Source: Blastocladiella emersonii ATCC 22665
Lineage: Eukaryota; Fungi; Blastocladiomycota
NCBI GenBank assembly: GCA_025594325.1
Contig: JANHCV010000001.1
Span: forward strand, 2,480,001 to 2,544,000
DNA length: 64,000 nucleotides
Direction of reading: 5' to 3'
Shown here: positions 7,947-11,995 of the stretch, piece after piece
Numbering within the stretch: the first letter of the stretch is position 1
Layout of the letters: each line of letters begins with the position of its first letter
Position numbers and translations under genes: made by a program
Notes under the pieces: model-generated
The model's input: only the letters and a program-made list of their open reading frames with translations
Told to the model about the DNA's origin: nothing
The model's database searches: none

Positions 7947-8173
7947 ACCTGGTCGTGTATCAGCGGAGACGCTGTGTCGACCACATCGGTGTACCGGAAA
8001 GCTCGCTTCGATCCTCCCTCCCTCCTTCCAAATCTAAGAAACCCATACACACGTGTGCTGTTGCTTTCTCTCTCTTCTCGATCTCGCCTTGCTCCCTCCT
8101 TGTCTGTACATTTATAAACGTTCCGTTCGCATCTCACACGAGTCATTCACGGCAAAGAGTACATTCCACGACT

Positions 8174-9481: not shown

Positions 9482-11995
9482 ATGGCGTCCGTAGTCAAAG
9501 CCCTCATGGGCCTCGCGCGCCTTCGCATGACCATCTTCTCGGCCGTCACCTACTCGACCGCCGCGACGATCGGTGCCGCTATCGGTGCCTCTGCTCTTGG
9601 AAGCGGCCATGGCCTCGAGCTCCCCCGCTTCGTCCTCGGCTGGGCGTTCGTGCTCCTGTGCCAGCTCACTGCCCATTTCCTGGGCGAGTACCACGACCTG
9701 CCGTCCGACAAGTACAACTTCCTCGCGTCTCCCTTCACTGGCGGGAGCCAGGTGCTCATCTCGAGCCGCGCCGTGACTCCCGAGGCGTGCAAACGCGCCG
9801 GGCACATCTGCGCCGCTGCCGCCGCGGTCCTCCTCGTGTGGGGTCTACCGCTCGATGGCGGCCGCGAGGAAGCGCTGATCCCGCTCGGCTTCGCCATGAT
9901 CGCGCTGGCGCACCAGTACTCGGCCCCGCCGTTCCTCCTCAACCACCGCGCGTGGGGCGAGACGACCGCCGCCGTCGTCATGAACATCCTCTTGCCCTAC
10001 TTTGGCGCGCTGCTGCATATCCCGGCCGCCGTCTACGCCGACATGCCGTGGATCCAGCTCCACCGCCACCTGGCGCTCCTCGTGCTCCCCGCCGCGTGCT
10101 TCAAGTACGCGCTGTTCATTGTCCTCAACTGGGCCGACCGCCGCGCCGATTTCCTCGGCGGCAAGATCACGCTCGCGCTGGCGGTCAGCCCTAACGCCCT
10201 GTACGCCCGCTACGTCGCCGCCATGGTCTCCGGCTACGCCTGCGCCGCGGGCGCGTGGTACCTTCTCCCCGAGACGCGTGGACCGTACTTGCTGGCGTAC
10301 ATTGGCATCTTCCTGACGCTCCCGCTGGCGCACAAGCTGATTCTCGACCTGCACCCGCGCGCCCGCCAGCTTTCGGCATTCACCGTGTTCCTCTCCCTGC
10401 AGCACGCGCCGCTCCCGGTCCTCGTCATCTTTGCGTGCCAGGTCGTCAACGAGCTCCGCGCCGACCCGGCCATGACCTACCTCCCGACCATGTGGATTCG
10501 CCTCGTGCCCCTGCTCCCGTACATCCACATGCTCATCGTGCGCCGCCCGCCGCCCAAGGTCATGGTCGGCCTCGTCAAGCGCGAGCGAGCGCTGCACGCC
10601 GAGTCGCAGGTCGTCATCGTGGGTGCCGGTATCGCTGGCGTCGTGGCTGCGCTGGAGCTCCGCGCCGCCGGCGTCCCCTTCCTCGTCCTCGAGAAGCGCC
10701 CGCGCGGCCAGGCTGACCGCGGCGCGGACCTCGCCGTGTGGCCCGCGGCCGCCAAGGTCCTCCGCCGCTGGCTCCCCTCGGCCGCGTGGTGGCACAGCAA
10801 CTCGTTCCGCATCGACCGCGTGTTCATGGACCGCCTGTTCGGCCACGACGACGGCACCTGGTCGACGCGCCCGCTGCGCCAGGTCAACATGGCCGGCGTG
10901 ACGGCGCCGACCGGCGAGCAGTTCCGCCTCGTTGCGCGGTCGCCGCTCATGACCGCGCTCGCCGACCAGCTCGGCGACGACGACGTCCTGTACGGCGCGC
11001 GCGTGCTCGACCTCGACGAGCGCCAGGACCACATCCTCGTCCGGTACGCGTACCAGGACGTGGAGCACACGGTCCGCGCGCGGCTCGTCATTGGCGCCGA
11101 CGGCGTCCAGTCCGTGTGCCGCCGCGCCATGCTCGCGAACGCGGCCCGCCCGATCGTGTCCAACGACGACCACGTCGCGCCCGCCGCCTCGCTCAGTGCC
11201 GTTGGGAACTCGGAGCCCCGGTACGCCGGCGAGGTGTGCTACCGCGGGCTCATCGACTTCACGGACCCGGACCCGGCGGTGCAGGCGCTCCGCCGCGAGT
11301 TCGAGGCGGTCGACGAGCAGCGGCCGCACTCGATGCCGCTCCTGTACGGCGTCGGGCTCCGCGCGTCCTTCTCGTTCATCAACGAGACCAAGACGGTCGG
11401 GTGCTGGTGGGTCAAGGAGGCGTCCGACGAGCGGTACAGCGTGCAGGGCGTCGGCGGCTGGCGCGCCCGCCGCAAGGAGGTGTGCAACTGGCCCGAGCCG
11501 CTGCGCCAGTGCCACGATCTGACGCGCGACGAGGACCTGTACCTGCAGTATGTGCCGCTGATTCGACGAGTCCTGATCCAACATTGCTGACGCGTGCCGC
11601 CGCGAATTTGTAGAGACATTGTCGACCGCGAGCCGCAGACGTCGTGGTGCAGCTACCGGATCGTCCTGGTCGGCGACGCGGCACACCCGGTGACGCCGAA
11701 CATGGGCCAGGGCGCGAACATGGCCATCGAGGACGTGGCGTACCTCGTCAAGCTGCTCACGCGAATGCCCAACCACGTCGACGCCTTCATCGAGTACTGC
11801 AACCGGCGCATGCCGCACACCTCGGCCATCGCCAAGGAGTCGCACATCCAGGCCAAGCTCGGCCAGTTCAAGAACCCGGTCCTGGTCGAGCTGCGGTCGC
11901 TGCTGCTCTCGAGCGTGCCCGCGCGCATTTTCGAGCGCAAGCTGGCCGGCACCAACCTCTGGACCGAGCCGCCACTCCCGGACCAGGCCCTGTAG
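9482..11995 (+). CDS. Fusion of a MenA/UBIAD1-type UbiA prenyltransferase (N-term, multi-TM) and a class A FAD-dependent monooxygenase (C-term); ~815 aa; exons 9482-11547 and 11614-11995
   Basis: UbiA motifs GEYHDLPSD...FTGGSQVL and NWADRRADFLGGKITLA. FAD motifs VVIVGAGIAG (GxGxxG), LVIGADGVQS (DG) and IVLVGDAAHPVTPNMGQGANMAIED (GD). The two domains share one uninterrupted ORF, and a 66-nt intron joins the GD-motif exon in frame. Confidence 0.88.

Follow-up and report, generated by a model that had tools for sequence, protein, structure and literature searches.

A UbiA-type membrane prenyltransferase and a group A flavin monooxygenase joined in one polypeptide in Blastocladiella emersonii and distant eukaryotes

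Introduction

Among redox and antioxidant lipids, prenylated quinones hold a central place, and to our knowledge the known eukaryotic routes (COQ2, UBIAD1, HPT/HST, MenA) all rely on stand-alone prenyltransferases. Here we describe a gene of the zoosporic fungus Blastocladiella emersonii ATCC 22665 (Blastocladiomycota) that encodes a UbiA-superfamily membrane prenyltransferase and a group A flavin monooxygenase as a single protein of 815 residues. The gene lies on the forward strand, at positions 9482 to 11995 of a stretch of 64,000 nucleotides (hereafter the window; GCA_025594325.1, contig JANHCV010000001.1, positions 2,480,001 to 2,544,000), to which the feature coordinates given below refer.

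Both domain families, and the pairing of their chemistries, are already known. In the pairs COQ2 and COQ6, or UbiA and UbiH, a prenyltransferase shares one prenyl-phenol lipid with a group A ring hydroxylase, as the two halves of the B. emersonii protein would. Another flavoenzyme of this kind, VibMO1, decarboxylatively hydroxylates prenyl-4-hydroxybenzoate. The vibralactone route of the basidiomycete Boreostereum vibrans combines a UbiA enzyme that prenylates 4-hydroxybenzoate with an NADPH- and flavin adenine dinucleotide (FAD)-dependent monooxygenase that oxygenates the prenyl-phenol, the two being separate proteins (PMC10257657). The fusion shares this prenylate-then-oxygenate logic with VibP1 or VibP2 and VibO or VibMO1, and VibMO1 (8gsm) is a neighbour of its C-terminal half in both sequence and structure; the Vib enzymes are, however, separate proteins of a lineage-specific secondary pathway, whereas the fusion is one chain found in several eukaryotic supergroups. 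What is new here is the covalent joining, its conservation over distant eukaryotes, and a branch of prenyltransferases without a characterised member.

Two exons encode a single polypeptide

The open reading frame (ORF) starts at the ATG at 9482 and is free of stop codons as far as 11590. Exon 1 (9482..11547) carries residues 1-688 and two bases of codon 689, and contains the complete prenyltransferase domain, the linker and most of the monooxygenase. It ends at the donor site CTGCA/GTATGT at 11548, which opens the only intron (11548..11613; 66 nucleotides, GT..AG, phase 2), and the acceptor TTTGTAG/A ends at 11613. Removal of this intron links the ORF with the frame that closes at the stop codon 11993-11995, exon 2 (11614..11995) providing residues 689-815, the stop and the C-terminal part of the monooxygenase with its GDAAHP...GQGANMAIED segment. 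The joined exons measure 2448 nucleotides, and their translation is identical to the 815-residue NCBI protein H9P43_000928 of the same strain (P0001 in our searches), which is publicly labelled 'hypothetical protein'. A real gene of two exons and one 815-residue polypeptide is thereby confirmed. A preliminary description of the locus, written by a model from the letters and their ORFs alone, had proposed exactly such a polypeptide, a UbiA-type prenyltransferase followed by a class A flavin monooxygenase, interrupted by one intron and belonging to a zoosporic fungus. The continuous frame, the coordinates, the intron and the source organism all bear it out, and the motifs that it quoted (EYHDLPSD, the second acidic motif, GxGxxG, DG and GD) lie where it had placed them.

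That two adjacent genes have been merged by annotation, or that an internal start at Met362 gives a free monooxygenase, can be given almost no credit. Met362 does sit 19 residues ahead of the GxGxxG motif, and the genome holds two monooxygenase-only paralogues, so the flavoenzyme can exist without the membrane domain; but neither a stop codon nor a splice signal separates the two domains in the ORF listing or in the sequence, and about 30 clusters of homologues show the two domains in collinear arrangement. The homologue of the red alga Rhodosorus marinus is moreover represented in its 90% cluster by a complete 776-codon MMETSP transcript, that is, by one mRNA, and the predicted TM-score (pTM) of 0.85 for the structural model of the whole chain, described below, implies a set arrangement of the two halves.

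The membrane domain belongs to a distinct UbiA branch

Residues 1-355 (9482..10546) form a UbiA-superfamily membrane prenyltransferase domain with ten predicted helices, identified by Pfam, AlphaFold2 (AF2), Foldseek and hydropathy. The Pfam UbiA model (PF01040) is covered from position 5 to 247 of 250, at 31.5 bits for a cut-off of 34.2, and the relatives P0157, P0044 and P0036 score 69-97 bits with it. Since searches of the PDB with this half, whether a lone sequence or a profile was used, gave no meaningful match, the assignment to the UbiA fold comes from the fold search. An AF2 model built on an alignment of 44 sequences (predicted local distance difference test, pLDDT, 94.6; pTM 0.93) has UBIAD1, archaeal DGGGP synthases, AfUbiA and ApUbiA as its first 14 Foldseek matches, all at probability 1.0 and with TM-scores by target of 0.63-0.74; the top match is UBIAD1 (8djk_B, E = 2.2e-5, 18% identity).

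The acidic residues of both motifs are present. The first, GEYHDLPSD (residues 68-76, 9683..9709), provides G68, D72 and D76, and the second reads N216-W-A-D219-R-R-A-D223-F-L-G-G-K228-I-T230 (10127..10171), the segment NWADRRADFLGGKITL spanning residues 216-231. E69 is present as well. D72, D76, D219, D223 and K228 are invariant in the 44 sequences, and N216 and T230 are invariant in the 20 full-length fusions too. Helices 2 and 3 are connected by a subfamily-specific P-x-TGGS-x-VL loop (residues 84-92, 9731..9757), of which G87, G88, S89 and L92 are invariant in the fusions and in their bacterial stand-alone relatives. This invariant loop, N[ED]xxDxxxD and N..D...D....K.T are the marks of the subfamily; within it, the fusion rows of the alignment read GExxDxxxD (GDxxDxxxD in one of them) and the stand-alone rows N[ED]xxDxxxD. 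A tenth membrane helix (residues 335-353, 10484..10540), seen among the AF2 helices and in the hydropathy scan (1.34), closes the domain.

The 'MenA/UBIAD1-type' label used in the preliminary description did not withstand these comparisons. A true MenA/UBIAD1 orthologue, which would make a menaquinone-type naphthoquinone for the flavoenzyme to oxidise or reduce, would agree with the MenA equivalogs being the best NCBIfam models for residues 1-350, with the first Foldseek match and with the MenA-like N..D...D....K.T of the second motif, all features that the domain shares with UBIAD1 and MenA along with the membrane fold and the two acidic motifs. It is nonetheless very unlikely. The MenA models give 22-24 bits against cut-offs of 239-264 (23.7 against 264 for NF004751), about one-tenth of what is required, TIGR00751 (MenA) yields no match at E <= 0.01, and identity to UBIAD1 is the 18% given above; the Gly-led first motif, the extra tenth helix, the TGGS loop and the flavoenzyme partner are further differences. 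The HPT/HST model NF009525 is likewise not matched by the window protein, and relatives reach at most 26 bits with it (cut-off 226). As none of the nine closest stand-alone relatives scanned reaches the MenA, ChlG, DGGGPS or HPT cut-offs, the whole group is best seen as an uncharacterised UbiA subfamily, and its bacterial members are linked with HPPD, not with men genes (see below). On profile scores and motifs the N-terminal domain thus belongs to a separate subfamily, for which 'MenA/UBIAD1-type' is merely a nearest-neighbour label.

UbiA-fold cyclases also retain the acidic motifs, and the replacement of Asn by Gly in the first motif departs from classical transferases; both points speak for the idea that the domain is a UbiA-type terpene cyclase (like Fma-TC) whose terpene product is oxidised by the monooxygenase. 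This proposal is highly improbable, given that the nearest relatives sit among genes of aromatic-acid supply and that the neighbours of the monooxygenase act on activated aromatic rings.

A shape search of the ESM Atlas with the UbiA model retrieved similar bacterial UbiA domains fused to other partners, namely Flavodoxin_2/FMN_red, PNPOx, PAS, a luciferase-like monooxygenase or COX15/CtaA. Fusion of UbiA domains to redox partners thus appears to be a recurring but little-studied theme, of which the present protein is a new instance.

The flavin monooxygenase domain resembles ring hydroxylases

Residues 376-815 (10607..11992, interrupted by the intron) form a group A flavin monooxygenase domain, recognised by Pfam, PDB matches and Foldseek. 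The Pfam model FAD_binding_3 (PF01494) scores 45.7 bits on exon 1 and 39.1 bits on exon 2, both above its cut-off of 22. The GxGxxG FAD fingerprint (GAGIAG, residues 381-386, 10622..10639, with G381, G383 and G386), the DG motif (D540-G541, 11099..11104) and the GD motif (G709-D710 of GDAAHP, 11672..11677) are invariant in the 20 fusions. This half also carries a signature specific to the fusion clade, GADLxxWP.

Sequence searches of the PDB matched TrlE, NicC, CtdE, VibMO1, PhzS and HpxO, and Foldseek (E 1e-19 to 1e-17, TM-scores by target 0.76-0.84) placed the domain in the same fold, with E-values of 4e-19 to 1e-17 for TrlE, HpxO, PhzS and 3HB6H; 3HB6H, vanillate 1-hydroxylase, salicylate hydroxylase, SorC and TropB complete the neighbours found by one method or the other. 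The best of them, by sequence and structure, are hydroxylases of phenols or aromatic acids, including 4-hydroxybenzoate 1-hydroxylase, and several of the group formed by NicC, PhzS, vanillate 1-hydroxylase, salicylate hydroxylase, 4-hydroxybenzoate 1-hydroxylase and VibMO1 are decarboxylative. The fold and FAD motifs are those of HpxO, 3HB6H, NicC, PhzS and TrlE, but identity is only 18-24%, all equivalog cut-offs are missed, and the fusion differs by its GADLxxWP signature, by its tether to a membrane enzyme and by an Ala at the position of the catalytic His47 of NicC. The best NCBIfam models for this half (HpxO, PRK07236, PRK07538, PRK06847, PRK06753 and 3-hydroxybenzoate 6-monooxygenase) likewise score far under their cut-offs, PRK06753 giving 87 bits on exon 2, and a feature search of the ESM Atlas returned just generic FAD_binding_3 clusters (score 0.84).

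Identity with COQ2/COQ6 was considered and rejected. TIGR01988, which covers UbiH, UbiF and COQ6, gives 32-47 bits for a cut-off of 224.65, the COQ6 model TIGR01989 gives 47 bits for 489 and the UbiH model 33 bits for 392. The B. emersonii genome moreover contains a separate, strong UbiA-family gene (202 bits), which is probably COQ2.

Group A flavin monooxygenases include olefin epoxidases, and Pyr5, AusM and Trt8 are monooxygenases of Dikarya that epoxidise prenyl chains. A meroterpenoid-type route could therefore be imagined, in which, once the UbiA domain has prenylated an aromatic compound, the terminal double bond of the prenyl chain is epoxidised by the monooxygenase and so made ready for a separate cyclase. 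The fungal indole- or olefin-epoxidising enzymes CtdE, PhqK, FqzB and AfoD are indeed among the structural neighbours, and a flavoenzyme tethered at the surface of the membrane would be well placed to act on a lipid tail. We nevertheless regard this route as unlikely: the best neighbours are ring hydroxylases, no Pyr4-like cyclase or further cluster genes are found near the fusion gene, and conservation in distant protists looks more like core lipid metabolism than like lineage-specific secondary metabolism.

A short basic linker and a predicted cytosolic flavoenzyme

The two domains are connected by a basic, disordered linker (RRPPPKV..., residues 356-375, 10547..10606) with 6 Lys or Arg residues. 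The full-length AF2 model has a pLDDT of 85.9, low confidence being confined to residues 360-374 of the linker, where pLDDT falls below 50, and to two surface loops. Domains of 355 and 440 residues could not give a whole-chain pTM of 0.85 unless they were confidently placed relative to each other, which leads us to infer that the domains pack in a defined arrangement.

Ten membrane helices are found with both the AF2 model and the hydropathy scan. If the N-terminus is inside, the inside loops comprise the N-terminus, residues 72-99 (with motif 1), 146-158, 219-236 (with motif 2), 290-298 and the linker (354-375), and a local count gives 16 Lys and Arg on these loops versus 2 outside. Both termini and both acidic motifs are thus predicted to face the cytosol. 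With the tenth helix the chain crosses back to where the acidic motifs lie, so that the flavoenzyme is predicted to lie on the cytosolic face. Stand-alone relatives of about 340-360 residues likewise have two hydrophobic segments past residue 280; the even helix count is therefore probably older than the fusion, and would have allowed a C-terminal partner to be added on the cytosolic side.

The fusion arose once and is widespread in eukaryotes

A profile of the UbiA half was run against 1.84 billion representative sequences, and a profile of the monooxygenase half was then applied to the best 150 listed. The first search gave 57 proteins at E <= 1e-30, and both domains were found in about 30 of the best 150 representatives, which stand for clusters at 50% identity and are mostly 560-960 residues long, a few being truncated. 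Fusions score 180-550 bits, as compared with about 110-160 for the closest stand-alone relatives, which are bacterial. No bacterial fusion is present among these 150. Word-based protein searches, capped at 8000 candidates, gave at least five fusions, and the census given here is therefore that of the exhaustive search of representatives. Public records name the fusion proteins 'hypothetical' or 'FAD-binding domain-containing', and full-text searches of the literature found no description of a fusion between UbiA and a flavin monooxygenase; a paper on the ebo operon (PMC5133447) turned out to be unrelated. The architecture, which the preliminary description did not recognise, thus appears to be undescribed, but it is not rare.

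Taxon names could be attached to about one-third of the fusion clusters. Within Blastocladiomycota the fusion occurs in B. emersonii, Catenaria anguillulae, Paraphysoderma sedebokerense and Sorochytrium milnesiophthora, and it is also found in the monoblepharid chytrid Hyaloraphidium curvatum, in Planoprotostelium fungivorum (Amoebozoa), Plasmodiophora brassicae (Rhizaria) and the red alga R. marinus, and in the ochrophytes Choristocarpus tenellus and Phaeothamnion confervicola. A fragment from Palmaria falls with one sub-clade that lacks a taxon name. The other fusion contigs inspected are eukaryotic, with ATP-citrate lyase and proteasome genes that contain introns, or with NSRP1, CCT/B-box, ABC1 or JmjC genes. 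The fusion clade is eukaryotic wherever its source is known, and the motif positions of both halves are invariant across the 20 full-length homologues.

Separate trees of the two domains were built by quick searches, are unrooted and carry only Shimodaira-Hasegawa-like approximate likelihood-ratio (SH-aLRT) support. The tree of the UbiA half gathers the fusions and two truncated fragments in one clade (SH-aLRT 100), set apart by a long branch from 36 stand-alone sequences. The monooxygenase tree also groups the fusions in one clade (SH-aLRT 100), the nearest stand-alone bacterial monooxygenases being distant in the tree (about 100 bits, 24-30% identical). Sub-clades match between the two trees: Blastocladiella with Catenaria (and with Sorochytrium and Paraphysoderma), Choristocarpus with Phaeothamnion, P0004 with Planoprotostelium, Rhodosorus with P0018, and a large algal group. 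A single clade with congruent sub-clades in both trees supports a single fusion event, after which the two halves would have been inherited together.

The preliminary description had seen in the single intron a hint of horizontal origin, and had proposed separate domain phylogenies as a check. These place the blastoclads together in each tree, within the fusion clade. One intron in 2.5 kb, a patchy eukaryotic distribution and the position of the blastoclads beside ochrophytes in the UbiA tree (with a weak support of 81) could still be taken to speak for a recent transfer into B. emersonii. Such a transfer is exceedingly unlikely in view of the native codon usage (G+C content at third codon positions, GC3, of 0.935 in the coding frame versus 0.86-0.92 in neighbouring coding frames), of the orthologues in four blastoclad genera and of the absence of bacterial fusions among the best 150 representatives. 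In addition, the intron is matched in codon position and phase (CA/GTACGT ... CAG/A) by that of a relative on a eukaryotic metagenome contig (L001), with 41% identity in the UbiA half. On a larger scale, the patchy spread across supergroups is compatible both with ancient descent followed by losses and with transfers between eukaryotes.

As a separate observation, two different 50% clusters (L015/L016 and L013/L014, from algal metagenome and Logan contigs) have an NSRP1_N gene adjoining the fusion gene, and in L015 a gene for an ABC1/UbiB-family kinase lies at a distance of about 5 kb from it. This proximity may be plain synteny among related algae, with at most a putative tie of the ABC1 gene to quinone metabolism.

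Bacterial relatives point to a phenolic acid acceptor

The closest stand-alone relatives of the membrane domain are bacterial prenyltransferases, among them those of Pleurocapsa, Nostoc, Flexithrix and Nannocystis. They have the TGGS loop, both acidic motifs, a length of about 350 residues and hydrophobic segments near the C-terminus, and they probably use an aromatic acid; they differ in being stand-alone, in keeping the canonical Asn, in being only 22-30% identical to the fusion and in having no monooxygenase of its clade next to them. Seventeen bacterial loci with the stand-alone clade were fetched, of which 15 were examined. An HPPD-type dioxygenase gene directly adjoins the prenyltransferase gene in 8 of these 15 (L017-L021, L023, L024 and L026), which come from cyanobacteria (Pleurocapsa, cyanobacterium SU3, two Thermosynechococcaceae contigs and Nostoc), from Bacteroidota (Flexithrix and a Flammeovirgaceae metagenome-assembled genome) and from a Nannocystis. 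Genes for an O-methyltransferase, a UbiE-like methyltransferase, DAHP synthase and prephenate dehydrogenase are frequent companions in these cassettes, and genes for chorismate mutase and EPSP synthase also occur alongside. Other loci contain genes for a thiamine pyrophosphate-dependent decarboxylase and an aldehyde dehydrogenase, or for dehydroquinase, or for HMG-CoA reductase. An FAD enzyme encoded beside the Pleurocapsa prenyltransferase is halogenase-like, and no relative of the fused monooxygenase.

This neighbourhood of HPPD and shikimate genes suggests that the prenyl acceptor is likely a phenolic acid derived from tyrosine or shikimate, most simply homogentisate, and the bacterial cassette probably encodes a pathway, not described so far, that converts homogentisate into a prenyl-quinone or meroterpenoid. 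For the fusion itself, homogentisate as the specific acceptor is a tentative and rather doubtful proposal, drawn by analogy solely from these bacterial gene neighbourhoods. B. emersonii has an HPPD of its own (L034, G000:C10:56009-57130), 49% identical to that of a cyanobacterial cassette. The 761-residue open frame of this HPPD gene results from upstream read-through in GC-rich DNA, and translation probably begins at the Met of MTSYSDKGPKPE. When the O-methyltransferase of the bacterial cassette was used as a query against the B. emersonii genome, no match was obtained.

Proposed function of the fusion protein

Taken as a general model, the reading that we favour and hold to be reasonably probable is that one membrane protein performs two reactions in the biosynthesis of a prenyl-phenol or prenyl-quinone. 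The membrane domain would use a prenyl diphosphate to prenylate a shikimate- or tyrosine-derived phenolic acid, for example homogentisate or 4-hydroxybenzoate, and the tethered NAD(P)H- and FAD-dependent group A monooxygenase would hydroxylate the phenolic ring, either of the acceptor or of the prenylated product. Hydroxylation could thus come before or after prenyl transfer, loss of the carboxyl group would be possible, and the product would be a prenylated hydroquinone or quinone. The short basic linker would hold the monooxygenase at the cytosolic surface of the membrane, beside the active site of the prenyltransferase. Catalytic activity, substrates, order of steps and product are in this model what we infer from domain identities, intact catalytic motifs and predicted topology. 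The 'prenylate then oxidise' enzyme of the preliminary description is therefore a reasonable functional reading, in which the acceptor and the order of the two steps stay conjectural.

Several observations weigh against this bifunctional model. The membrane domain falls slightly under the Pfam gathering cut-off. The canonical Asn of N(D/E)xxDxxxD is Gly throughout the fusion clade, so that binding of the prenyl donor may differ. The Ala in place of His47 of NicC means that no specific hydroxylase mechanism can be transferred residue by residue. None of the neighbours of the B. emersonii gene is a pathway gene clustered with it, the flanking genes being an RSU1-like leucine-rich repeat gene and H2A.Z. 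Finally, the link with HPPD is a distant one, given the low identity of the bacterial relatives and the long branch that sets them apart, and none of the bacterial loci examined has a monooxygenase of the fusion clade beside the prenyltransferase gene.

A bolder extension of the same model is more speculative, and we consider it improbable enough to be put forward only with reserve. On this view the fusion would mark an ancient pathway of eukaryotes, so far unrecognised, whose product is a prenylated hydroquinone, quinone or chromanol lipid. It would start from homogentisate or a comparable phenolic acid and would differ from the ubiquinone, plastoquinone/tocopherol and vitamin K routes. Zoosporic fungi, Amoebozoa, plasmodiophorids, red algae and ochrophytes would have kept such a pathway, and animals, Dikarya and land plants would have lost it. 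If this were true, the tether would pass the lipid straight from the intramembrane prenyltransferase to the flavoenzyme.

Related genes of B. emersonii

The fusion gene is the only one in the B. emersonii genome with a UbiA domain of this type. The two monooxygenase-only paralogues, L036 (G000:C11:2761409-2762944, minus strand) and L037 (G000:C18:1143727-1145258, plus strand), score 314 and 277 bits, respectively, with the fusion-clade profile. They are 79% identical to each other, are without a UbiA domain and carry long low-complexity extensions rich in Ser, Pro and Arg. Both nest, on a long branch, in the blastoclad part of the fusion clade of the monooxygenase tree (support 92), and they are probably duplicates of the fusion gene that have lost the membrane domain. 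With such an origin, the flavoenzyme would also be able to function without its tether.

A fourth UbiA-family gene (L011, G000:C2:114170-114793; ORF L011:1099-2694) encodes 531 residues and scores 53.9 bits with Pfam UbiA. Its NCBIfam matches are weak and limited to archaeal-type 'prenyltransferase' and GGGP geranylgeranyltransferase models, and it is not obviously COQ2, COX10 or UBIAD1. Within the window, a 666-residue ORF runs antisense to the fusion gene (9845-11845, minus strand). Its GC3 of 0.70, against 0.935 in the sense frame, marks it as a shadow ORF to which GC-rich coding DNA gives rise, not as a gene.

Significance

The fusion is conserved in five or more distant lineages of eukaryotes, not all of which are photosynthetic. 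This suggests that it makes an undescribed lipid, and the fusion offers a compact two-step enzyme that is open to direct assay. It also marks an uncharacterised branch of UbiA prenyltransferases whose bacterial members occur in cassettes with HPPD and O-methyltransferase genes. For zoosporic fungi, it adds another case of a protist-type gene that was kept in these lineages and lost by Dikarya. Since the crop pathogen Plasmodiophora brassicae also carries the fusion, the pathway could gain applied interest, either as a marker or as ordinary biochemistry to be characterised.

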